NCBI RefSeq assembly: GCF_000006765.1
Contig: NC_002516.2
Reading direction: 5' to 3' (one strand)
From: Pseudomonas aeruginosa PAO1
GTDB lineage: Bacteria; Pseudomonadota; Gammaproteobacteria; Pseudomonadales; Pseudomonadaceae
Length of the DNA stretch: 64,000 nucleotides
Under the pieces are notes generated by a model. It saw only the letters and a program-made list of their open reading frames with translations. It was not told the DNA's origin and made no database searches. Positions 6,974-62,065 of this stretch are shown here, piece after piece. The first letter of the stretch is position 1; each line of letters begins with the position of its first letter. The position numbers and the translations under genes were made by a program.

Positions 6974-8137
6974 ATGAGCCACGACCTCAGCCAACTGCGT
7001 AAATTCGTCTCGCCCGAGATCATCTTCGGCGCCGGCTGCCGGCACAGCGTCGCCAACTACGTGAAGACCTTCGGTGCGCGCAAGGTCCTGCTGGTCTCCG
7101 ACCCCGGCGTGCTCGCCGCCGGCTGGGTCGCCGACATCCAGGCAAGCCTGGAGGGGCAGGGCATCGACTACTGCCTGTATACCGACGTTTCGCCCAACCC
7201 CCGGGTCGACGAGGTGATGCTCGGCGCCGAGTTCTATCGCAGCGAGGGCTGCAATGTGATCGTCGCGGTGGGCGGCGGCAGCCCGATGGATTGCGCCAAG
7301 GGCATCGGCATCGTCGCCGCCCATGGCCGCAGCATCCTCGAGTTCGAAGGCGTCGACCGGCTGCGGGTGCCGAGTCCGCCGCTGATCCTGATCCCGACCA
7401 CCGCCGGGACTTCGGCGGACGTCTCGCAGTTCGTGATCATTTCCAACCAGGACGAGCGCATGAAGTTCTCCGTGGTGAGCAAGGCGGTTGTGCCTGACGT
7501 CTCGCTGATCGACCCGGAAACCACGTTGACCATGGATCCCTTCCTTTCGGCCTGTACCGGCATCGATGCACTGGTACACGCCATCGAGGCGTTCGTCTCC
7601 ACCGGCCACGGGCCGCTGACCGATCCCCACGCGCTGGAAGCGATGCGCCTGATCGATGGCAATCTGGTACAGATGATCGCCAATCCCGGCGACATCGCCC
7701 TGCGCGAGAAGATCATGCTCGGGAGCATGCAGGCCGGGCTGGCCTTCTCCAACGCCATCCTCGGCGCGGTGCATGCCATGTCGCACAGCCTCGGCGGCTA
7801 TCTCGACCTGCCCCACGGCCTGTGCAACGCGGCGCTGGTCGAACACGTGGTGGCGTTCAACTACAGCGCCGCGCCGGAACGCTTCAAGGTGATCGCCGAG
7901 ACCTTCGGCATCGATTGCCGCGGTCTGACCCAGGGGCAGGTCCGCCAGCGCCTGGTGGACCACCTGATCGCCTTCAAGCACGCCGTGGGTTTCCACGAGA
8001 GCCTCGCCCTGCACGGGGTCGGCAGCTCCGACATTCCTTTCCTCTCGCGCCACGCGATGCAGGACCCGTGCATCCTTACCAACCCGCGCGAGTCGAGCCA
8101 GCGCGATGTCGAGGTGGTCTATGGCGAGGCCCTCTGA
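6974..8137 (+). CDS. ercA: Iron-containing (group III) alcohol dehydrogenase-like protein
   Basis: GGGSPMDCAK, IPTTAGTSADVS, DALVHAIE, HAMSHSLGG..HGLCNA; alternative ATG at 6962. Confidence 0.88.
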   Translation: MSHDLSQLRKFVSPEIIFGAGCRHSVANYVKTFGARKVLLVSDPGVLAAGWVADIQASLEGQGIDYCLYTDVSPNPRVDEVMLGAEFYRSEGCNVIVAVGGGSPMDCAKGIGIVAAHGRSILEFEGVDRLRVPSPPLILIPTTAGTSADVSQFVIISNQDERMKFSVVSKAVVPDVSLIDPETTLTMDPFLSACTGIDALVHAIEAFVSTGHGPLTDPHALEAMRLIDGNLVQMIANPGDIALREKIMLGSMQAGLAFSNAILGAVHAMSHSLGGYLDLPHGLCNAALVEHVVAFNYSAAPERFKVIAETFGIDCRGLTQGQVRQRLVDHLIAFKHAVGFHESLALHGVGSSDIPFLSRHAMQDPCILTNPRESSQRDVEVVYGEAL

Positions 8138-9815
8138 GCAGCAGCAGGAGGCCCTGGCCGGGTTACTCGGCCTGGGCAGCCACTCCGCGCGCAAGAGCCA
8201 CTACCCGGAGCTGCTGGCGCGCCTGGAGGAGCTGGAGGCCGAGCGCAACCGCTACAAATGGCTGTTCGAGCACGCGGTGCACGGCATCTTCCAGGCCAGC
8301 CTCGGCCAGGGGCTGCGCGCCGCCAATCCGGCGCTGGCGCAGATGCTCGGCTACGACGATCCGCAACAGGTGCTCTGGTCGCTGGAGGACATGGCCGGGC
8401 AACTGTTCGTCGGCGGCGAGGCCGAGATGCGACGGATCCGCGCGCTGCTGCGCGAGCGCGGCGGCCTGTTCGGCTACGAGACGCGCCTCTGGCGCAGGGA
8501 CGGCAGTCACATCGAGGTATTGATGAACCTGCTGCTCAGGCACGACGAGGAAGAATTGGTCGAAGGTTTCGTCGCCGACATCACCGAGCGGGTCCAGGCC
8601 CAGCAGCGCCTGCAGACCATGAACGAGGAGCTGGAGCGGCGGGTAGCCGAGCGCACCCACGAGCTGGAAGAGCTCAACCGCCAGTTGCGCCAGGCGCGCG
8701 ACGCCGCCGAAGCCGCCAACCACAGCAAGGACAAGTACCTCGCCGCCGCCAGCCACGACCTGCTGCAACCGCTCAACGCGGCGCGGCTGCTGGTCGACAC
8801 CCTGCGCGAACGGGGCCTGCCGGCCGCCGAACTGCAACTGGTGGAGCGCACCCACCTGGCCCTGGAAGGCGCCGAGACCTTGCTCACCGACCTGCTGGAA
8901 ATCGCCCGGCTCGACCAGAGCGCGATCCGTCCGGACCTGGACGACTATTCCCTCGACGAACTGCTCGCTCCGCTGGCCTCGGAGTTCGAGGAAGTCGCGC
9001 GTGCCGCCGGCCTGGCCCTGCGTGCGCGGATCCCGCGACTAGCAGTGCGCACCGACGCGCGCCTGCTGTCGCGGATCCTGCGCAACTTGCTCAGCAACGC
9101 CTGCCGCTACACCGAGCGCGGCAGCGTGCTGCTGGGGGCGCGCCGGCGTGGCGGCAAGGTACGCCTGGAGGTGTGGGACACTGGCCGGGGCATCCCCGCC
9201 GACCAGTTGCAGGCGATCTTCCTCGAGTTCAACCAACTGGACGCCGGGCGCGCTTCCGAGCGCCGTGGCGTCGGACTCGGGCTGGCCATCGTCGACCGTA
9301 TCGCCGGCATCCTCGGCTACCGCATCGAGGTGCATTCGACTCCAGGCCGAGGCTCGCTGTTCGCCATCGAGGTGCCGCTGGTCCGCAAGCCGGCGCGGCC
9401 AGCACCTGGCGAGGCGATTGCGCGGGTTTCGGCTGGTGATCCGCTGCCGGGACGGCGGCTGCTGGTGGTGGACAACGAGACCGAGATTCTCTTCAGCATG
9501 TCCGCGCTGCTCGGCCAGTGGGGCTGCGAGGTGCTTACCGCCACCGACCTGGAAGGCGCGCGCAAGGCGCTCGATGGCCGCGCGCCGGATGCGATCCTGG
9601 TCGACTACCACCTGGACCACGGCGCTACCGGTTGCCAGTTGCTGGGCGCCTTGCGCGAGGACTACGGCGCGGAGATCGCCGCGGTGATGATCACCGCCGA
9701 CCGCAGCGACGATTGCCGCCGCGCGCTGGCCCGCCTGGGCGTGCCGCTGCTCAACAAGCCGCTGAAGCCCGGCAAGCTGCGCGCGGCCCTGAGCGCCTTG
9801 CTCGGCGAGCTCTAG
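8121..9815 (+). CDS. ercS: Soluble hybrid sensor kinase (PAS-HisKA-HATPase-REC)
   Basis: ASHDLLQPL H-box, NLLSNA, DTGRGI, GVGLGL, receiver LVVDN..ILVDYHLD..KP; overlaps the ercA end. Confidence 0.88.
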   Translation: MARPSEQQQEALAGLLGLGSHSARKSHYPELLARLEELEAERNRYKWLFEHAVHGIFQASLGQGLRAANPALAQMLGYDDPQQVLWSLEDMAGQLFVGGEAEMRRIRALLRERGGLFGYETRLWRRDGSHIEVLMNLLLRHDEEELVEGFVADITERVQAQQRLQTMNEELERRVAERTHELEELNRQLRQARDAAEAANHSKDKYLAAASHDLLQPLNAARLLVDTLRERGLPAAELQLVERTHLALEGAETLLTDLLEIARLDQSAIRPDLDDYSLDELLAPLASEFEEVARAAGLALRARIPRLAVRTDARLLSRILRNLLSNACRYTERGSVLLGARRRGGKVRLEVWDTGRGIPADQLQAIFLEFNQLDAGRASERRGVGLGLAIVDRIAGILGYRIEVHSTPGRGSLFAIEVPLVRKPARPAPGEAIARVSAGDPLPGRRLLVVDNETEILFSMSALLGQWGCEVLTATDLEGARKALDGRAPDAILVDYHLDHGATGCQLLGALREDYGAEIAAVMITADRSDDCRRALARLGVPLLNKPLKPGKLRAALSALLGEL

Positions 9816-52895: not shown

Positions 52896-53804
52896 ATGTC
52901 GCAACCCGCCTATCGTCTGTTCAATGTCGAACTCAAGCGCCGTGAGCAACTCAGCCCGGCGCTGACCCGCTTCGTCTTCGGCGGTCCGGAGGTCGCCGAG
53001 ATGAAGACCCTTGCCGCCGACCAGCGGATCAAGATCTTCTTCCCCGATGCCAGCGGCCAGCCGCCCAGCCTGCCCGGCGGCAGCGAGTGGTACCAGGCCT
53101 ATCGCAGCGTCGAGCCGGCCCGCCGGCCGCCGATGCGTACCTACACCATCCGTGCGCTGCGCGCCGAGCAGGAAGAGGTCGACGTGGAGTTCGTCCTCCA
53201 CGGCGAGAACGGCCCGGCCTCGGCCTGGGCGACCCACGCGCGGATCGGCGACCGCCTGCAACTGGCCGCGCCCAACCGGCAATACGGCGATGACCCCGGC
53301 GGCTACGAATGGAAACCGCCGGCTGGCGTCCGCCATATCCTGCTGATCGCCGACGAAACCGCCTTGCCCGCGGTGGCGGGAATTCTCGAGGAGCTGGCCG
53401 GCGAAACCGAGCCGCCGGTGGTCGAGGCCTTTCTCGAAGTGCCGGGAGAAGCCGACATCCTCGACCTGCCGGCGATTCCCGCTGCGCGCCTGCACTGGCT
53501 GCCGCGCCACCAGGCCGGTATCCATTCGCGCAACGGCGAGCGGATGATCGAGGCGGCGCGCCAGGCGCGGCTGCCGGAACGCGAGGTGGCGGGTGGTGCG
53601 GCCCAGGAACTGGAGGACATCGATATCGACGAGGAGATCCTCTGGGAACTGGCGAGCCCCGAGAGCGGCAGTTTCTACGCCTGGGTCGCCGGCGAGTCGG
53701 CGGCGGTGATGGCGATCCGGCGCTACCTGGTGCAGGAGCGCGGTATCGACAAGCGTCATCTGACCCTGATGGGCTATTGGCGCCTGGGCAAGGTGTTCGA
53801 CTGA
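52896..53804 (+). CDS. Siderophore-interacting protein (ViuB-like FAD ferric reductase), 302 aa
   Basis: MRTYTIRA, VEFVLHGENGPASAW, LIADETALPA, FYAWVAGES, MGYWR. Confidence 0.88.
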   Translation: MSQPAYRLFNVELKRREQLSPALTRFVFGGPEVAEMKTLAADQRIKIFFPDASGQPPSLPGGSEWYQAYRSVEPARRPPMRTYTIRALRAEQEEVDVEFVLHGENGPASAWATHARIGDRLQLAAPNRQYGDDPGGYEWKPPAGVRHILLIADETALPAVAGILEELAGETEPPVVEAFLEVPGEADILDLPAIPAARLHWLPRHQAGIHSRNGERMIEAARQARLPEREVAGGAAQELEDIDIDEEILWELASPESGSFYAWVAGESAAVMAIRRYLVQERGIDKRHLTLMGYWRLGKVFD

Positions 53805-54478
53805 TGGGCCGCTTCGTCGGGAAACAGGCGGACGGCTACGAGACGCGGATCGGCCGCCTGTTGCCGGGCTACGAGTTGCTGCACCTGCTCAGTCGCGCGC
53901 AGTTGCTGGCCCGTCTGCCGGAACGGGCGCGCCTGCTCAGCGTCGGCTGCGGCGCCGGCGGCGAACTGGCGGAGCTGGCCGGGTTGCGTCCAGGCTGGCG
54001 TTTCGTCGCGGCGGACCTGTCGGCCGACATGCTCGCCCTGGCCCGCCAGCGCTGCGCCAGGCTCGGCCTGCTGGAGCGGATCGAGCTGCACTGCGGCGAC
54101 GTCGCCGGGCTACCGCCTGCGCCGCCTTGCGATGCGGCGCTGGTTCTGCTGGTGCTGCATTTCCTGCGCGGCGACCAGGCCAAGCGGCGCTTTCTCGAGG
54201 CGGTCGCCGAGCGTCTGGCGCCAGCGGCGCCGTTGCTGCTGGCCAACCTGATGGAAGCCCGGGACGCCTTCGAACGTCCGGTGCAGGCCGAGGCCTGCCG
54301 CTTGGCCGGGCTTTCCCCGGAGGACAGCGACGGCATGCTGCAACGCTTGCGCGAGGATTTCGATCCGTTGTCCGAGCAGCGCCTCGGCGAACTGCTGGAA
54401 GACACCGGCTTCGTCCTGCCCAGCCGCTATTTCCAGGCCGTGGGCTACCAGGCCTGGATCGCCTTCCGCGCCGGCTGA
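53804..54478 (+). CDS. Class I SAM-dependent methyltransferase, 224 aa
   Basis: LLSVGCGAGGE, DLSADML; TGATG coupling to the upstream gene. Confidence 0.85.
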   Translation: MGRFVGKQADGYETRIGRLLPGYELLHLLSRAQLLARLPERARLLSVGCGAGGELAELAGLRPGWRFVAADLSADMLALARQRCARLGLLERIELHCGDVAGLPPAPPCDAALVLLVLHFLRGDQAKRRFLEAVAERLAPAAPLLLANLMEARDAFERPVQAEACRLAGLSPEDSDGMLQRLREDFDPLSEQRLGELLEDTGFVLPSRYFQAVGYQAWIAFRAG

Positions 54479-54485
54479 GGATGCC

Positions 54486-56144
54486 TCAGGCGAGGCGCGC
54501 CTGCGGCGTGATCTGGCGTGGGTCGGTCAGCAGCTCCAGCAGCGCCGGGCGTCCGCTTTCGCGGGCGCGGCGGAATGCGGCGGGGAAGTCGGCGCTGCAT
54601 TCCACTCGTTCGGCGTGGGCGCCGAAGGCTCGCGCCAGGGCGACGAAGTCGGGGTTGTCCAGGCGGGTGGCGGATACCCGCCCGGGATATTCGCGCTCCT
54701 GATGCATGCGGATGGTGCCGAGCATGCCGTTGTTGACCACGATCACCACCGGCGTCGCGCCGAACTGCGCGGCGGTCGCCAGCTCCTGCGGATACATCAT
54801 GAAACAGCCGTCGCCGGCGAAGCACACCACGCTGCGCTGCGGATCGCGCAGGCTGGCGGCGATCGCGGCGGGCAGGCCGTAGCCCATGGCGCCGTTGGTC
54901 GGCGCCAACTGCGTGCGGGCCTGGCGATAGCGGTAGAAGCGATGCACCCAGACGGCATAGTTGCCGGCACCGTTGGCGATCACCGCGTCGTCCGGCAGGT
55001 TTTCGCTGAGGTACGCGACCACGGACGCCAGGTCGACGCCCTGGACGGCGGGGTCGCTCGCGGCCGGGGTCGAGTAGGCCAGGTAATCGGCATGGGCGGC
55101 TTCGCGCCAGTCCTGCCAGGTGCTCGAGGGCAACGGCGCGAGGTCGGCCAGGGCCTCGGCGAAGGCACACGGGGTGGCCTGGATCGGCAATCGCGCCAGG
55201 TAGACGCGGTTCAGTTCCGCGCTGTCCGGATGCACGTGGATCAGCGTCTGCGCGGGGGCCGGACTACGCACCAGGCTGTAGCCGGCGCTCGGCGTTTCGC
55301 CCAGGCGCGCCCCGACCACCAGCAGCAGGTCGGCCTGGCGCAGCCGCTCCAATAGCGCCGGCGCCGCGCCGAAGCCCAGTTGTCCGGCGTAGTGCGGGTC
55401 ACGGTTGTCGAACAGGTCCTGACGACGGAACGAGGTGGCCACCGGCAGGCCATTGGCCTCGACGAAGGCGCCTAGCCGTTTCCTGGCGGCGCTGTCCCAG
55501 CCGCTGCCGCCAAGTACCAGCAGGGGGCGCCTGGCGTTCGCCAGCAGTTCGCGCAGTTCCGCCATCGCCGTGGCGCCCGGCCGCCCCGGAAGCACCCTTG
55601 GCTCCGGCGCATCGGCGACCTGCGCGGAACCGAAGAGGATTTCCTCGGGCAGGGCGACCACGACCGGGCCCGGTCGGCCCGAGGTGGCGACGCTGAAGGC
55701 GCGGCCGACGATCTCCGGGATGCGTTCGATACGGTCGATTTCCACGGCCCACTTGGCCAGGCCCGAGAACATCTGCACGTAGTCGACTTCCTGGAACGCC
55801 TCGCGGCCCTTGAAGGCGCTTTCCACCTGGCCGACGAACAGGATCATCGGCGTCGAGTCCTGCTGCGCCGTGTGCACGCCATTCGCCGCATGGGTGGCAC
55901 CGGGGCCGCGGGTGACGAAGCAGATGCCTGGTCGGCCGGTCAGCTTGCCGTAGGCATCGGCCATGTTCGAGGCGGCACCCTCGTGGCGGGTGACGACGGT
56001 GCGGATGCCGTCGGTGTCGTACAGCGCGTCGAGCACCGGCAGGTAGCTTTCCCCGGGGATGCAGTAGACGGTATCGACGGCATTGCGCCGCAATGCCTCT
56101 ACCAGGATCTGCCCGCCGTTGCGCTGGGGAAGGGAGTCGGACAT
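54486..56144 (-). CDS. Thiamine-diphosphate enzyme, acetolactate synthase large-subunit-like, 552 aa
   Basis: PGESYL, RHEGAA, TRGPGATH, GDGCFMM...VNNGMLG ThDP motif. Confidence 0.88.
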   Translation of the reverse strand: MSDSLPQRNGGQILVEALRRNAVDTVYCIPGESYLPVLDALYDTDGIRTVVTRHEGAASNMADAYGKLTGRPGICFVTRGPGATHAANGVHTAQQDSTPMILFVGQVESAFKGREAFQEVDYVQMFSGLAKWAVEIDRIERIPEIVGRAFSVATSGRPGPVVVALPEEILFGSAQVADAPEPRVLPGRPGATAMAELRELLANARRPLLVLGGSGWDSAARKRLGAFVEANGLPVATSFRRQDLFDNRDPHYAGQLGFGAAPALLERLRQADLLLVVGARLGETPSAGYSLVRSPAPAQTLIHVHPDSAELNRVYLARLPIQATPCAFAEALADLAPLPSSTWQDWREAAHADYLAYSTPAASDPAVQGVDLASVVAYLSENLPDDAVIANGAGNYAVWVHRFYRYRQARTQLAPTNGAMGYGLPAAIAASLRDPQRSVVCFAGDGCFMMYPQELATAAQFGATPVVIVVNNGMLGTIRMHQEREYPGRVSATRLDNPDFVALARAFGAHAERVECSADFPAAFRRARESGRPALLELLTDPRQITPQARLA

Positions 56145-56614
56145 GAGGGCCTCGCTGCGCACGTTGTGGTTGGCCCGATATTCGGCTCAAAGCGCGCCAG
56201 CGCCAAGCGACCTTTCTTCGCGAGTTCATTCCCGTGGCGCATGAACCCTCGTTCTTCGTTGCGGAGGAGGCCCCTTTCAGTGCTTCATCTGGACGAGAAG
56301 GGGACTGGAGCGTCATCGCAACGGGTCTCCTCTAGGCGGATCGGAGAGCGCGGTTTTCCGCTCGTTTCTCCATCTTCTCCTCAATTATGTCTATGTAACT
56401 ATTTCCTCTAGCAAAAAGGATTGTTCTTACATTATTTATAAATTTTCTTTGTTAGTTTTTCCTCGAGCAGTGCTGTTTGGCGGCTTCCTGAGGGGAAGAT
56501 TTTTGCTGGGGCGCTGAGATAGAGGACGAGTTTTTGTTTGGTCGTCGGTAAGTTTCGGCTTTTTGTCTTTTAGTCCGATGGGCAAGGGTACCAATGAGCA
56601 GGGAGGTTTTTAGG

Positions 56615-57400
56615 GTGAAATTTTTATCCGGTTTCTGGGAGCGCCGTCGTGCGAATGGCACTCCTCTAGTGTGTATCGAAGAGCGTGGCAGTGGTGCAGG
56701 CGAATTCTCGTCGGTGTCCCGTAGGGTTGAAACTGCTCCTGACGTACGTAGCGTTGCGTCTGCAGATTCGGAGCAGTGGATACATTCCCAGGAGTACGAG
56801 CTTTCTTTCTGGAAGGATAAATGGCCCTATCGCCATCTGTCTGTCGAGGAACTACAAGAGGCCCGGCATAAGGATGCAATGTGGTTTCTTGGGAAGATGG
56901 GGTTCACGTACGGCTCCTCGCATTATCGCTACGAAGGTTTTGAAGGTAAGGTTTTGGAAGTAGGTAGTGGGCCGATCGGCTTTTTCGAGAAGGTCGAAGG
57001 CGTGACAGTGACTGCCCAGGACTCATTGATGGGGCTGTATGCAGAGAATCTTCCATTCTCGATTCTCGGGGAAAGAGGTTCTTCTTGTTATATAAGGGAT
57101 GGTGTTGCCGATATAGAGAGTGCGTTCGATTTCGTCGTTTGCTCAAATGTGCTTGACCATACGGCCGACTGGATCCAGTTCCTGGTTGACTGTGTGGGCA
57201 GGTTGAGGACGGGCGGTGAGCTACTGTTGGTGACTGACTCTCGCGGAGTTCCAGCAATCGGGCATACACAGATATTCAGCCATGATCAACTGGTTCGTGT
57301 CTTGGAGTTGCTGGGAGCAAAGCAGTTCAAGGTGAAAGCCGTCGAGCGGGAGGATGGCGTTCACTGTGACTATCGTCATTATTTTCGGGTGGTTTTCTGA
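56615..57400 (+). CDS. Class I SAM-dependent methyltransferase-like protein (probable GTG start; in-frame ATG at 56594)
   Basis: KVLEVGSGPIG motif I, FDFVVCSNVLDH, LRTGGELLL; AGGGAGG SD 8 nt before GTG 56615. Confidence 0.78.
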   Translation: MKFLSGFWERRRANGTPLVCIEERGSGAGEFSSVSRRVETAPDVRSVASADSEQWIHSQEYELSFWKDKWPYRHLSVEELQEARHKDAMWFLGKMGFTYGSSHYRYEGFEGKVLEVGSGPIGFFEKVEGVTVTAQDSLMGLYAENLPFSILGERGSSCYIRDGVADIESAFDFVVCSNVLDHTADWIQFLVDCVGRLRTGGELLLVTDSRGVPAIGHTQIFSHDQLVRVLELLGAKQFKVKAVEREDGVHCDYRHYFRVVF

Positions 57401-57540
57401 ATTTCTCCGTGTCAATTGCTCTGCCTGGACGGGCGCTAGATTGGTATCGGCATTTCGGGGCTGGAGCCGGAAATATTGTGTTGGTGGCCAGTGGTTGGAT
57501 GGTTTTGATTGAAAAATAAAATATTATGAAAGGGATTTTC

Positions 57541-59001
57541 ATGAAGAAGTCTATGATTTCTTGTTTGTGTTTTGTGCTTCTTCTGCACTTTTTATTGGTT
57601 TCGAAAGTTGCGGCGGAAGTCTTTTGTGAGTCTTGTCTACAGGTGCGGGTGGAGCGCCCGCTAGTAGTTAGGGGTGGGTCTCACGAGCCTGGCCTGGATA
57701 CTAAGTTTTATGTAATAAAGCTCTCTGAAAATTTATTCAGAGGCTACAGTTCCGGAGGTGGTGATGCTTACGCAATAACCGGGCCGGAGGCCTGGTCTAT
57801 GGGCTGGCCTGCCAATAAGGTGTTAAGTAAAGGTGCCGCAGGGTCCTACAGCGAGTGTGGAGTATGGATAAATTCTCCGGTTAAGATCGGAGATGTCTAT
57901 GTTGCAGCCGTGCATCAGGAGCAAAAGTGCGACTACATCAATGGTGGGCAGGCGCACAAGTCAATGGGAGTATCGTTTTCTTATGACGGTCTATCTTGGG
58001 TTAATCCAATTACTGTGTTGACCAGCCCTGAGGCACCGAAGATGGGGACCCAATCTGGGGAGGGTGACTGTTCACTGGTTCGGGCCCCCGATGAAGGCTA
58101 CCTCTATATGTATTGTTTCAGGCCGGGGCGATGGGATAATATCGTGGCGCGTGCTCCGGAGGCATCTTATATGTTCCCGTCAAGCTGGAGGAAATTATAT
58201 AAAGGAAATTGGAGTGAGCCTGCGATTGGTGGTATGGCAGATAGTTTGGGTGCTATAGGGAGTAGTGTTGGGTATTGGCGGGCTGGACGTAAAGTTATTG
58301 CGCTTGATCTCGATCCATGGTTTGGCGGGATAAAGCTGTCATTGTCCTCGGATTATAAGAATTTTTTTACTCTTAAGGATCCTCTTGTTCCGTTTGTTAA
58401 AAATGATTGGGATCGAAATTTAATTGGGAAGTCAACTGACTTAATCGCATATGTGGGGGTCGTGAATCTATTTGGTGGCGGGAATCGAGTTGATAATTCC
58501 GGCTGGGGTATCACCTATACTTATATACCGCATGGAGGAACGCTAAAGGAAAAGTATCTCGTCTTTCAAGGGGTTAACATGAAGGTGGTTAGTGAACCTA
58601 AACAGGCTTCCGTAGGTTTGGCTCTTACCCGCTGGGAGCACAGGAGTGGGAAATACAGAGTTACTACTCTGCCTGTGGTGAGACAATCCGAGTACACCGA
58701 GCGTAATCGTATCGCATATCTCCTGACTCGTCCTGTCGTTGGTATTGAAACGCTTGAGGTGGAGGAGTGTGTGAATAGACAGGATCCCGATGATTATCTC
58801 GTGACTGATGCAGGAGGATGTGACGGGAGCGGACATGATAGAATCGCCACTATCGGTTGGGTGTATAAATATCCACAAAAAAATACGGTCCCTATTTATC
58901 GCTGTTACTCTCCGCTTGGCGAAAATCATTTTCTATCATCGAATGCAGGGTGTGATGATTTGGGAAGCTTGGAATGGAAGCTTGGATATGGTTTGAAGTA
59001 A
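57541..59001 (+). CDS. Secreted Cys-rich protein: propeller-like N-domain plus C-terminal triple repeat, 486 aa (alternative ATG 57526)
   Basis: Signal peptide MKKSMISCLCFVLLLHFLLVSKVAA; SYDGLSW, GEGDCSLV, WRKLYKGNWSEPAIGG; C-terminal VPIYRCY..NHFLS repeat. Confidence 0.8.
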   Translation: MKKSMISCLCFVLLLHFLLVSKVAAEVFCESCLQVRVERPLVVRGGSHEPGLDTKFYVIKLSENLFRGYSSGGGDAYAITGPEAWSMGWPANKVLSKGAAGSYSECGVWINSPVKIGDVYVAAVHQEQKCDYINGGQAHKSMGVSFSYDGLSWVNPITVLTSPEAPKMGTQSGEGDCSLVRAPDEGYLYMYCFRPGRWDNIVARAPEASYMFPSSWRKLYKGNWSEPAIGGMADSLGAIGSSVGYWRAGRKVIALDLDPWFGGIKLSLSSDYKNFFTLKDPLVPFVKNDWDRNLIGKSTDLIAYVGVVNLFGGGNRVDNSGWGITYTYIPHGGTLKEKYLVFQGVNMKVVSEPKQASVGLALTRWEHRSGKYRVTTLPVVRQSEYTERNRIAYLLTRPVVGIETLEVEECVNRQDPDDYLVTDAGGCDGSGHDRIATIGWVYKYPQKNTVPIYRCYSPLGENHFLSSNAGCDDLGSLEWKLGYGLK

Positions 59002-59125
59002 GGCAAAAATTTTCGATTGCCGCTTCAGTTGTTTCCACGTGTTCTTACGGGCTATTGGTTTGTAGCCCCCTGCAAGAGGCTGTCTGCCGAAATCATGCCG
59101 TCCGACGTGCAGCGACTGACATCGA

Positions 59126-59440
59126 TCAAATCAGCCACCACTTGAACAGGAAGAAGAACGCCATGCCCAGCAGCATGCTCGCCAGGGTATTGCGGGTATA
59201 GAGCACCAGCGCCACGGTGACTGCGCCGCTGACCAGGTAGGGATTGTCGTAGCCGAGGTCGATGCGGCCCTCGGGCATGAACACGATGGGGCCGCAGATC
59301 GCCGTGAGCATTCCCGGCACGGCGAAACCGAGGAACTGCCGCAGGTTGCTGCCGAGGCGGATCGGCAGGCGCGGTTCGAGGAACAGGTAGCGGTTGAGGA
59401 AGACGATCGCGCCCATCCCGAAGATCACTGCCCAGACCAT
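59126..59440 (-). CDS. azlD: AzlD-family small membrane subunit, 104 aa
   Basis: MVWAVIFGMGAIVFLNRYLF, FAVPGMLTAI; overlaps the azlC-like gene. Confidence 0.8.
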   Translation of the reverse strand: MVWAVIFGMGAIVFLNRYLFLEPRLPIRLGSNLRQFLGFAVPGMLTAICGPIVFMPEGRIDLGYDNPYLVSGAVTVALVLYTRNTLASMLLGMAFFFLFKWWLI

Positions 59441-60135: not shown

Positions 60136-60688
60136 GGGGGCATGGCGGTGGTGAACGTCGGTCCAGCATGCCAGCAGGCGCATCGGGCTGGCTTGAACGA
60201 TCTTGCTCTTCGTATCCGTTATCCACGCAGGCGAAAGCGGCCGGTGTCCTTCCTTATATAAGGAGGACGGGCAGGGCAGGCGGCGGACGAGCGAGGGCCG
60301 CTTGAGGGCGCTGCGAAGAATCGAGGGAGAGAAGAACCGGAGCGGAGCTAACGCGGATGCTGACCGATCTTGTGGCCGCGGAACTTGGCGCCGAGGGACG
60401 GCTGGTAGGACATGGAACACCCGGTTTATTGCTGTTGTAGGGTTGGCACAGCTTAGCCTTGTTCAATTTTTCGTACAACGGAGCCTGTAAAATATCTGCT
60501 GCACCAGGTTGAACACCTTGCCTGGCCTGGCTTTGGCCGCTTTCGCGATGCGCTGGAAGGCCCTGTCTACGGCCATTTCGCCGGCCGCGAGGGCGATGAG
60601 AGGGCTATTGACAACAAATTGGCTTTCCGATTGACTCTGGCTCCAGCCCCCGCATGATTGAAATTTTTAACAAAAAAGGTGTTGCATC

Positions 60689-62065
60689 ATGTCGGTACCC
60701 CTGCGTGCCGTTCAGCTCACTGAGCCGAGCCTGTTCCTTCAGGAACATCCCGAGGTCCAGTTCGTCGACCTTCTGATTTCAGACATGAATGGCGTGGTTC
60801 GCGGCAAGCGAATCGAACGCAACAGTCTGCCCAAAGTCTTCGAAAAAGGTATCAACCTTCCCGCTTCCCTGTTCGCCCTCGATATCACCGGCTCCACCGT
60901 AGAGAGTACCGGCCTGGGTCTCGACATCGGCGACGCCGACCGGATCTGCTACCCGATCCCCGGCACCCTCTCCATGGAACCCTGGCAGAAGCGCCCGACC
61001 GCGCAACTGCTGATGACCATGCACGAACTGGAAGGCGAGCCGTTCTTCGCCGACCCCCGCGAAGTCCTGCGCCAGGTGGTGGCCAGGTTCACCGAGATGG
61101 AACTGACCATCGTCGCCGCCTTCGAGCTGGAGTTCTACCTGATCGACCAGGAGAACGTGAACGGCCGGCCGCAGCCGCCGCGCTCGCCGATCTCCGGCAA
61201 GCGTCCGCAGTCGGTGCAGGTGTACTCCATCGACGACCTCGACGAATACGTCGAGTGCCTCCAGGACATCATCGACGGCGCCCGCGCCCAGGGCATCCCG
61301 GCCGACGCCATCGTCGCCGAATCCGCACCGGCGCAGTTCGAGGTCAACCTGCATCACGTCGCCGACCCGATGAAGGCCTGCGACTATGCGGTGCTGCTCA
61401 AGCGCCTGATCAAGAACATCGCCTACGACCATGAGATGGACACCACCTTCATGGCCAAGCCCTATCCGGGCCAGGCCGGGAACGGACTGCACGTGCATAT
61501 CTCGCTGCTCGACAAGCACGGCAACAACATCTTCACCAGCGAGGATCCCGAGCAGAACGCCGCATTGCGCCATGCGATCGGCGGCGTGCTCGAGACCCTG
61601 CCGGCCTCCATGGCCTTCCTCTGCCCGAACGTCAACTCCTACCGCCGCTTCGGTTCGCAGTTCTACGTGCCGAACGCGCCGAGCTGGGGCCTGGACAACC
61701 GCACCGTGGCCCTGCGCGTGCCCACCGGCAGCCCGGACGCGGTACGCCTGGAACATCGCGTCGCCGGCGCCGACGCCAACCCCTACCTGCTGCTGGCCTC
61801 GGTGCTTGCCGGGGTGCACCACGGGCTGACCAACAAGGTCGAGCCGGGCGCGCCGATCGAAGGCAACTCCTACGAGCAGTTGGAGCCGAGCCTGCCGAAC
61901 AACCTGCGCGACGCCCTGCGCGAACTGGACGACAGCGAGATCCTGGCGAAGTACATCGATCCGAAGTACATCGACATCTTCGTCGCCTGCAAGGAAAGCG
62001 AGCTGGAGGAGTTCGAGTACTCGATCTCCGACCTCGAGTACAACTGGTACCTGCACACCGTGTGA
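60689..62065 (+). CDS. pauA4: Gamma-glutamylpolyamine synthetase (glutamine synthetase-like, PuuA-type)
   Basis: DMNGVVRGKRI, AFELEFYL, ESAPAQFEVNL, GNGLHVHISL, NRTVALRVP, LEHRVAGADANPYL. Confidence 0.82.
   Translation: MSVPLRAVQLTEPSLFLQEHPEVQFVDLLISDMNGVVRGKRIERNSLPKVFEKGINLPASLFALDITGSTVESTGLGLDIGDADRICYPIPGTLSMEPWQKRPTAQLLMTMHELEGEPFFADPREVLRQVVARFTEMELTIVAAFELEFYLIDQENVNGRPQPPRSPISGKRPQSVQVYSIDDLDEYVECLQDIIDGARAQGIPADAIVAESAPAQFEVNLHHVADPMKACDYAVLLKRLIKNIAYDHEMDTTFMAKPYPGQAGNGLHVHISLLDKHGNNIFTSEDPEQNAALRHAIGGVLETLPASMAFLCPNVNSYRRFGSQFYVPNAPSWGLDNRTVALRVPTGSPDAVRLEHRVAGADANPYLLLASVLAGVHHGLTNKVEPGAPIEGNSYEQLEPSLPNNLRDALRELDDSEILAKYIDPKYIDIFVACKESELEEFEYSISDLEYNWYLHTV

Follow-up and report, generated by a model that had tools for sequence, protein, structure and literature searches.

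What is an islet of low guanine-plus-cytosine (G+C) DNA, holding two genes, doing among the high-G+C core genes of Pseudomonas aeruginosa PAO1? The islet lies near one end of a 64,000-nucleotide stretch of contig NC_002516.2, the window of this analysis, in which an initial annotation had singled it out as the top candidate for an undescribed system made of a methyltransferase and a secreted protein. We found that the DNA is foreign by composition and codon usage and that its two open reading frames (ORFs) encode accessory enzymes of recognisable kinds. The designation as a top candidate was thus too strong: the islet is an ordinary accessory glycan-enzyme islet of known kinds, with no new kind of system in it. 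The explanation that we favour, with slightly better than even confidence, is that the islet was acquired horizontally long ago, that its two enzymes most likely act on cell-surface polysaccharide, and that they form a facultative cassette and not an obligate system. Our confidence in any specific glycan is much lower. The features that carry the argument are the following.

56340–59060, no strand: low-G+C islet between high-G+C core genes (composition, window scans, G+C at third codon positions)
56594–57400, plus strand: ORF1, class I S-adenosylmethionine (SAM)-dependent methyltransferase, 268 amino acids from the ATG at 56594 (Pfam, alignment, AlphaFold, Foldseek)
57526–59001, plus strand: ORF2, predicted exported glycosidase-like protein, 491 amino acids from the ATG at 57526 (ORF list, translation, model)

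The composition profile gives a G+C of 0.48 for 56340–59060, with 0.682 on the left side and 0.627 on the right. Finer values run at 0.42–0.52 across approximately the same interval and at 0.63–0.74 in the flanks, and the left break falls at about 56350. The abrupt drop noticed from hand counts (22–50% versus 73%) is therefore real, and the limits proposed for it, 56370–59050, were correct to within about 30 bases. In scans with 1-kilobase (kb) and 50-base windows, the islet holds the sole 1-kb window below 0.56 G+C in the whole 64 kb, over which the 1-kb values average 0.669 (standard deviation 0.047; minimum 0.461). Foreign codon usage was likewise borne out: G+C at third codon positions is 0.55 in ORF1 and 0.45 in ORF2, as against 0.88–0.90 in the neighbouring genes for a thiamine-pyrophosphate enzyme, AzlD, a glutamine-synthetase-family protein and a permease. 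The content of the islet is two intact co-oriented ORFs, and the block at 56380–56460 upstream of them, described from the outset as very AT-rich, has a G+C of 0.235.

ORF1 is a cytoplasmic SAM methyltransferase, as first proposed. Pfam places it, weakly, in Methyltransf_11 (22.1 bits against a cut-off of 21.2) and also matches Methyltransf_12 and Methyltransf_23. We found 60 relatives, and an alignment of 38 of them contains 27 invariant columns, all kept in ORF1 and including the motif I glycines G124, G126 and G129. The AlphaFold model is Rossmann-type, with a predicted local distance difference test score (pLDDT) above 89 from residue 60 onward and residues 1–52 disordered. Foldseek returned 848 matches at E ≤ 0.001, and the best 50 listed are methyltransferases or methyltransferase-fold families. 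Both hallmarks of a class I SAM methyltransferase, a glycine-rich motif I and a Rossmann-type seven-strand fold, are present in ORF1. Some sources name ORF1 relatives UbiG, a name that does not hold for ORF1: TIGR01983 scores 26.7 bits against 102.95, and over residues 171–236 only.

The conserved core of ORF1 begins near residue 60 with a pair of N-terminal helices. An alternative start, the GTG at 56615 behind a GGGAGG Shine–Dalgarno sequence, agrees with the N-termini of relatives. Public records often give a protein of 173 amino acids that starts at Met96. This call is probably too short, since it leaves out the conserved helices together with four residues that are invariant (E69, W73, W77 and R91); the confidently modelled helices are encoded upstream of that start, within 56594–56879.

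The surroundings of ORF1 relatives point to a role in glycan synthesis. In Rhodoplanes serenus, the relative (57% identity) lies amid dTDP-rhamnose pathway (rml) genes, glycosyltransferases and a 1254-residue methyltransferase–glycosyltransferase fusion. The Microvirga lupini relative (53%) accompanies GtrA, a GtrII-type glucosyltransferase, an acyltransferase, glycosyltransferases and a fusion of the same kind, and on a 190-kb metagenome contig the relative (57%) is found with Wzm/Wzt-type ABC-transporter parts, GT2 enzymes, an epimerase and again a methyltransferase–glycosyltransferase fusion. On the basis of these clusters, we regard ORF1 with moderate confidence as a putative sugar O-methyltransferase for a glycan of the O-polysaccharide type.

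Methyltransferases of O-antigen and common polysaccharide antigen in ABC-transporter-dependent pathways include WbdD-type terminators and, in P. aeruginosa, genes of the PA5457/PA5459 type. ORF1 resembles them as a class I SAM enzyme whose relatives occur near Wzm/Wzt-type parts, rhamnose genes and the fusion. It differs from WbdD-type enzymes in being small and stand-alone, with conserved N-terminal helices of its own and without a kinase or coiled-coil ruler, and from the group as a whole in that the P. aeruginosa gene sits outside any polysaccharide locus. O-antigen modification genes are also carried by phages, as serotype-converting 'morons', and one ORF1 relative (59%) does sit in a prophage, flanked by its tail-fibre and lysis genes. 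Unlike those genes, ORF1 has this as its only phage case: no relative was found in IMG/VR contigs, GenBank phages or PHROGs, and none in PLSDB plasmids.

ORF2 was described initially as an exported glycan-active protein, and the evidence is consistent with an exported protein of glycosidase-type fold. Its parts are as follows.

57526–57615, plus strand: predicted signal peptide, residues 1–30 (translation, low-confidence model helix at residues 10–26, N-termini of relatives)
57637–58590, plus strand: beta-propeller domain, residues ~38–355, about 21 strands equal to five blades (DSSP on the model, Foldseek, invariant columns)
58603–58995, plus strand: C-terminal beta-sandwich, residues ~360–490, weakly DUF5648-like (DSSP, DUF5648 matches below cut-off)

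The signal peptide, a probable one read by eye from the translation, has a basic start, a hydrophobic core and the residues V-A-A before the predicted cleavage after residue 30, and it has no lipobox; all ORF2 relatives examined have equivalent Sec-type N-termini. Public records use a form of 486 residues, which starts at the ATG at 57541 and has the better Shine–Dalgarno sequence. The ORF2 cluster contains 900 P. aeruginosa sequences, every one of them named 'hypothetical protein'. In the AlphaFold model (pLDDT 90.7; predicted template-modelling score 0.88), about 21 strands extend to residue 355 and a nine-strand beta-sandwich follows. The family has 35 invariant columns, among them D58, H130, E132, K145, E179 and D181 in the propeller domain, and ORF2 keeps them all. 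The family also has ten cysteines that are fully or almost fully conserved, in keeping with an oxidising compartment. A Cys-x-x-Cys motif (residues 34–37; 57625–57636) stands right after the predicted cleavage site and occurs in at least 90% of 38 relatives.

The best Foldseek match of ORF2 in the PDB is EndoMA1 (8ic1/8hhv; E 1e-9) of glycoside hydrolase (GH) family 183, followed by members of GH117, GH43, GH62 and GH32 and then by sialidases. EndoMA1 of Microbacterium arabinogalactanolyticum is a secreted enzyme with a five-bladed propeller, a beta-sandwich sugar-binding domain and the catalytic residues D33, D51 and E243 (PMC10509167). By its model and predicted signal peptide, ORF2 shares this architecture: it would be exported, and a five-bladed propeller precedes a beta-sandwich. 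The two differ in that the best match within the ORF2 family to PF13810 (DUF4185) is 22 bits against a gathering score of 39.5, and the template-modelling (TM) score is only ~0.4. The acidic invariants of the ORF2 family are D58, E132, E179 and D181. ORF2 itself has no match to PF13810; 14 of 38 relatives match it below the Pfam cut-off, the best at E 6e-4 to 8e-5 and 20–22 bits, and 25 of the 38 match DUF5648, also below cut-off. Two bridging sequences, P0113 and a Streptomyces protein, matched no GH183 chain in the PDB. We know of no D-arabinan in the hosts of the ORF2 family.

We also considered GH33, as UniRef names one Devosia relative a sialidase. Sialidases are recognised by a six-bladed propeller, repeated Asp-boxes, an Arg-triad/FRIP motif and a BNR profile match. 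The strand count of ORF2 corresponds to five blades, BNR_2 is matched by 2 of 38 relatives and below cut-off, the sequence matches have E-values of 0.5–0.8, and Foldseek ranks sialidases under the five-bladed families. Membership in GH183, GH33 or UbiG is thus not established, and the sequence criteria fail where tested.

The ORF2 family is large and lies outside every Pfam and NCBIfam model. A word-indexed search found 113 relatives, and an exhaustive search extended this to 2567 representative clusters at E ≤ 0.001, of which 296 reach E ≤ 1e-30. Fusions occur in the larger relatives, to PG_binding_1, dockerin, GH53, carbohydrate-binding-module-like or ricin-lectin domains. Together with the model, the fold matches and the sub-threshold DUF4185 matches, these domains suggest that ORF2 is a protein of the propeller-glycosidase type, exported and active on carbohydrate, and probably a distant relative of GH183 and not a demonstrated member.

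Where ORF2 relatives have a consistent gene neighbourhood, it is one of polysaccharide synthesis and export. We scanned one genome per species, which yielded 49 loci. In 35 of them, all from Devosia, Pelagibacterium and related metagenome-assembled genomes (MAGs), the gene order is Poly_export, GT4, Bac_transf (a priming sugar transferase), the ORF2 relative and Wzy_C. This Devosiaceae locus, which spans about 3000–13700 in L007, L009, L012–L018, L020–L033, L037, L040, L043 and L046–L048 of our locus set, also includes a polysaccharide deacetylase, a 669-residue protein before Poly_export and an APH-type kinase alongside, and the G+C of its ORF2 relative is host-like. Glycosidases encoded within exopolysaccharide loci are well known from PslG, the PelA hydrolase domain, BcsZ and AlgL, which have TIM-barrel or (alpha/alpha) folds. 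The Devosiaceae ORF2 relative is like them, as an exported hydrolase-like protein amid export, glycosyltransferase, priming and Wzy_C genes. ORF2 is unlike them in fold class, and its P. aeruginosa gene lies outside any polysaccharide locus.

Other settings are more varied. In Bradyrhizobium ganzhouense (L051, 7909–9561), the ORF2 relative is divergent and beside a GH54 alpha-L-arabinofuranosidase B (ArabFuran-catal and AbfB domains); this neighbour and the GH183-like fold together hint at furanoside substrates. In Variovorax, the relative stands alone. Few Pfam matches were found, with crude ORF calls, beside the relatives in Archangium, a Thermoanaerobaculia MAG, alpha- and deltaproteobacterial MAGs and Bradyrhizobium. 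A Legionella conjugative plasmid carries a 31% relative near an endo-alpha-1,4-polygalactosaminidase; the only other plasmid relative found is a Streptomyces ricin-lectin protein with a partial match of 29%. None was found in IMG/VR contigs.

Do the two genes belong together? The initial annotation treated them as one system, and the comparative data give a divided answer. Among 78 loci, the pair occurs only in P. aeruginosa and in three contigs of the Metapseudomonas furukawaii type (L001–L003), whereas 56 loci have ORF2 only and 15 the methyltransferase only; none of the 49 genomic ORF2 loci has a methyltransferase relative within 10 kb. One further pair came from a metagenome scan and lies on a contig from compost (L086). 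In each lineage the two genes are neighbours on the same strand, ORF2 preceding the methyltransferase in M. furukawaii and L086 and the order being reversed in P. aeruginosa. Identities among the three paired lineages are 61–74% for ORF2 and 61–69% for the methyltransferase, and all paired islets are of low G+C within high-G+C hosts. Homologues do co-occur outside P. aeruginosa, then, and the shared pairs set against the solo loci indicate a linkage that is real and recurrent in one host group and at the same time facultative. The idea of an obligate pair does not survive, also because ORF2 is missing from this site in many P. aeruginosa strains and because the species carries a second variant of it alone. 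This variant (59% identity) resides in some strains on an integrative conjugative element with a TraG-type coupling protein, a DtrJ-like protein and DUF2859 (L060, 1–7076; L061, L062), where it is divergent beside hcp and a vgrG-type gene and has no methyltransferase nearby. A metagenome contig close to M. furukawaii (L056) has the methyltransferase alone at the same site. There, direct repeats of 84 nucleotides (93% identity; 7590–7673 and 8915–8998), resembling repetitive extragenic palindromic (REP) sequences, bracket the methyltransferase-only islet; none was seen in P. aeruginosa.

Variation within P. aeruginosa separates the two genes in a different way. A look-up with the AzlD protein, which gives de-duplicated examples, returned ten versions of the site: four with both genes (L068–L071), five with the methyltransferase only and a filler sequence (L065–L067, L073, L074), and one interrupted by an insertion sequence (IS; L072). 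The segment that varies, and a hairpin just inside it, are as follows.

57443–59057, no strand: strain-variable segment of 1615 bases with all of ORF2, elsewhere replaced by an unrelated 131-base filler (blastn against ten P. aeruginosa loci, junction alignment)
57453–57472, plus strand: weak hairpin in the ORF1–ORF2 spacer, just within the strain-variable segment (terminator-like scan: 6 pairs, poor T tail)

Homology restarts exactly at both edges of the filler. In L072 (6548–8572), the IS (a transposase with rve and HTH_Tnp_1 domains) lies inside the methyltransferase gene of a strain without ORF2. Complete examples among the places seen number 10 with both genes (four isolate loci, L068–L071, and six metagenome contigs, L079–L082, L084 and L085) and 7 with the methyltransferase only (L065–L067, L072–L074, L083). 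ORF2 is thus polymorphic with sharp junctions, whereas the methyltransferase gene stays at the site in 10/10 P. aeruginosa loci. The P. aeruginosa chromosome in L071 matches the window at 100% identity across 6.1 kb. Synonymous diversity is 0.011–0.022 in the islet genes and 0.009–0.049 in flanking genes; the ratio of nonsynonymous to synonymous polymorphism (pN/pS) of the islet genes is 0.3–0.5, on 4–12 differences per comparison, and the copies compared have no internal stops. Synonymous diversity like that of the flanks and the lack of internal stops argue for an old resident that is still intact.

We infer the substrates, the enzymatic activities and any shared target of the two proteins as follows. 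The islet was acquired horizontally long ago and has kept its foreign composition. While a surface polysaccharide is being made, one of its sugars would be O-methylated by the methyltransferase on the cytoplasmic side. ORF2 would be exported through Sec and would cut or trim polysaccharide, either in the periplasm or extracellularly, and the two may share one target. At the site, the methyltransferase is the steady resident and ORF2 the presence/absence gene.

Several observations weigh against this explanation. On the ORF2 side, the TM-scores to solved glycosidases are only ~0.4, no Pfam or NCBIfam cut-off is reached, profile and single-sequence searches of the PDB gave no GH183 chain from which D33, D51 and E243 of EndoMA1 could be placed on ORF2, and neighbourhoods outside Devosiaceae are heterogeneous. 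On the ORF1 side, the fold matches are generic for class I (UbiG, NodS, NTMT, TehB) and thus do not point to a substrate, and two further neighbourhoods of relatives are without glycan genes. The pN/pS values draw on few differences. Finally, each gene usually occurs without the other, so that a shared target is suggested by their being neighbours in a single group of related hosts.

The strongest rival is that the two are unrelated cargo genes, brought in from the same low-G+C donor pool or into a permissive spot, with different substrates and no joint function, ORF2 perhaps being a secreted catabolic glycosidase. We consider this unlikely, while giving it real weight. The 56 and 15 solo loci fit it, and so do the strains that keep the methyltransferase and miss ORF2, the solo ORF2 variants on the P. 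aeruginosa conjugative element and the Legionella plasmid, the GH54 arabinofuranosidase in Bradyrhizobium, which suits a catabolic setting, and the 125-base spacer with its weak hairpin between the genes. It accounts less well for same-strand adjacency in three diverged lineages and in both orders, which indicates more than a single chance juxtaposition, or for the ties of both genes' relatives to surface-polysaccharide loci.

The initial annotation had offered another explanation, namely that ORF2 is an exported glycan-attacking effector from which the methyltransferase protects the cell's own glycan, or that the two are writer and reader of a methylated glycan. Linkage of the pair in three lineages would agree with this, the methyltransferase-only haplotypes resemble orphan immunity genes, and some distant ORF2 relatives have peptidoglycan-binding domains. 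On the conjugative element, the ORF2 variant has hcp/vgrG as neighbours, in a species whose examined loci all carry the methyltransferase gene; type VI cargo is nevertheless unlikely, because all ORF2 variants have Sec signal peptides. Furthermore, in the 35 Devosiaceae loci the ORF2 relative looks like a housekeeping member of an exopolysaccharide locus with no methyltransferase within 10 kb, and Variovorax, Archangium and other genomes carry an ORF2-type gene with no methyltransferase nearby. A two-gene effector/immunity or defence system does not fit a pair confined to P. aeruginosa haplotype A and four Metapseudomonas-like contigs, and neither PADLOC nor PHROGs gave a match to a known defence, phage or plasmid module; IMG/VR contigs contained no relatives. 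Nothing that we examined points to an effector or a writer and reader; the reading with self-protection is unsupported, and we rate the whole proposal as very unlikely.

Least probable of all is that the islet is decaying, silenced foreign DNA without present function: its composition has not drifted toward that of the host although synonymous diversity equals that of the flanks, ORF2 has been lost in many strains and truncated forms of it exist among P. aeruginosa records, one strain has an IS in the methyltransferase gene, and a literature search found no publication naming PA2036 or PA2037 (the names the two genes would bear) in P. aeruginosa, but both frames are intact here and in every compared strain carrying them, the family-invariant residues are all kept, pN/pS is below 1, and all ten loci examined have the methyltransferase gene, in one of them IS-interrupted.

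An old acquired islet with two surface-polysaccharide enzymes remains the preferred explanation, and the placement of the islet adds to the picture of how it is bordered and regulated. Its surroundings are as follows.

54486–56144, minus strand: left neighbour, thiamine-pyrophosphate enzyme, PA2035 'probable decarboxylase', 552 amino acids from the ATG at 56144 (Pfam TPP_enzyme_N/M/C, translation)
56145–56593, no strand: divergent intergenic region, including the AT-rich block 56380–56460 (sequence, composition)
56390–56410, minus strand: exact 21-nucleotide Pf4r peak_12 motif (PMC8402870 Table 1, exact match)
59126–59440, minus strand: right neighbour, AzlD (104 amino acids), then AzlC (Pfam AzlD and AzlC, translation)

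The PA2035 product has 552 amino acids in the gene calls of other strains too, and the exact AzlD protein is present in 28114 blocks of the collection searched. Beyond AzlD and AzlC come a glutamine-synthetase-family gene and an amino-acid permease. PA2040 is pauA4, which encodes a glutamine-synthetase-family protein (PMC13637380), and the gene at 60689–62065 fits it. From this fit and the distance of the Pf4r motif from PA2035, ORF1 would by position be PA2036 and ORF2 PA2037.

The initial annotation had found no mobility genes or terminal repeats, and we agree. There is no tRNA within the 64-kb window, and Pfam finds no integrase or transposase domain in the flanking genes. The sole terminal repeat is a 22-nucleotide direct repeat with 19/22 matches (86%), at 56334–56355 and 59355–59376, 3021 bases apart. 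The left copy lies at the G+C break and the right copy within azlD, 300 bases past the right break, which rules it out as an insertion scar; as the right copy is inside high-G+C azlD, the repeat is probably due to chance. The locus is therefore no classical genomic island, being without a tRNA, integrase or transposase domains and credible flanking repeats. Relatives elsewhere do adjoin an IS4 transposase, or ride on the conjugative element or the conjugative plasmid.

The sole regulatory datum that we found for the islet is a binding peak in the AT-rich block. In a chromatin immunoprecipitation sequencing (ChIP-seq) study of Pf4r, the repressor of phage Pf4, peak_12 has a fold enrichment of 3.96, is assigned to the upstream region of PA2035 and has a 21-nucleotide motif 246 bases upstream of that gene (PMC8402870, Table 1). 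The 21-mer has one exact copy in the window, 246 bases from the ATG at 56144, and no copy in 100 shuffles. This would place a phage repressor site within acquired DNA that is common to the divergent promoters of PA2035 and ORF1. The initial annotation took DNA of this kind to be silenced by MvaT/MvaU. The islet is AT-rich relative to the rest of the DNA, which makes it a candidate for such silencing; its locus is not among the entries in the supplements of PMC4466236.

Two further features of the window may be noted. A second, smaller G+C dip (0.52–0.54) at 60400–60850, between azlC and pauA4, resembles an ordinary divergent promoter region. Past PA2035, a gene at 53309–54478 (plus strand) encodes an unrelated class I methyltransferase domain (Methyltransf_25/12/11) in DNA of normal high G+C; other strains call it as 224 amino acids, adjoining a reductase of the siderophore-interacting-protein type.

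What would these enzymes mean for P. aeruginosa and for the ORF2 family? From its glycosidase fold and its conserved place in Devosiaceae exopolysaccharide loci, the ORF2 family may reasonably be put forward as a new glycoside hydrolase family, a proposal that we regard as plausible. A more specific proposal, which we hold to be quite unlikely, is a mark-and-trim or self-protection module in which both proteins act on one surface polysaccharide, for example a rhamnan made through an ABC transporter such as the common polysaccharide antigen. If it were true, the methyl mark would determine whether the putative glycosidase cuts and at what place, the mobile module would pass among Pseudomonas-type hosts and alter the receptors for phages, pyocins and competitors, and the ORF2 family would be a new glycoside hydrolase family of methylation-sensitive specificity. 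The natural variants of the site, with both genes, with the methyltransferase only or with the IS insertion, let function be approached through existing isolates. If the enzymes modify lipopolysaccharide or exopolysaccharide, they would add to strain-to-strain variation of the cell surface, a variation that has consequences for serology and for sensitivity to phages and pyocins.

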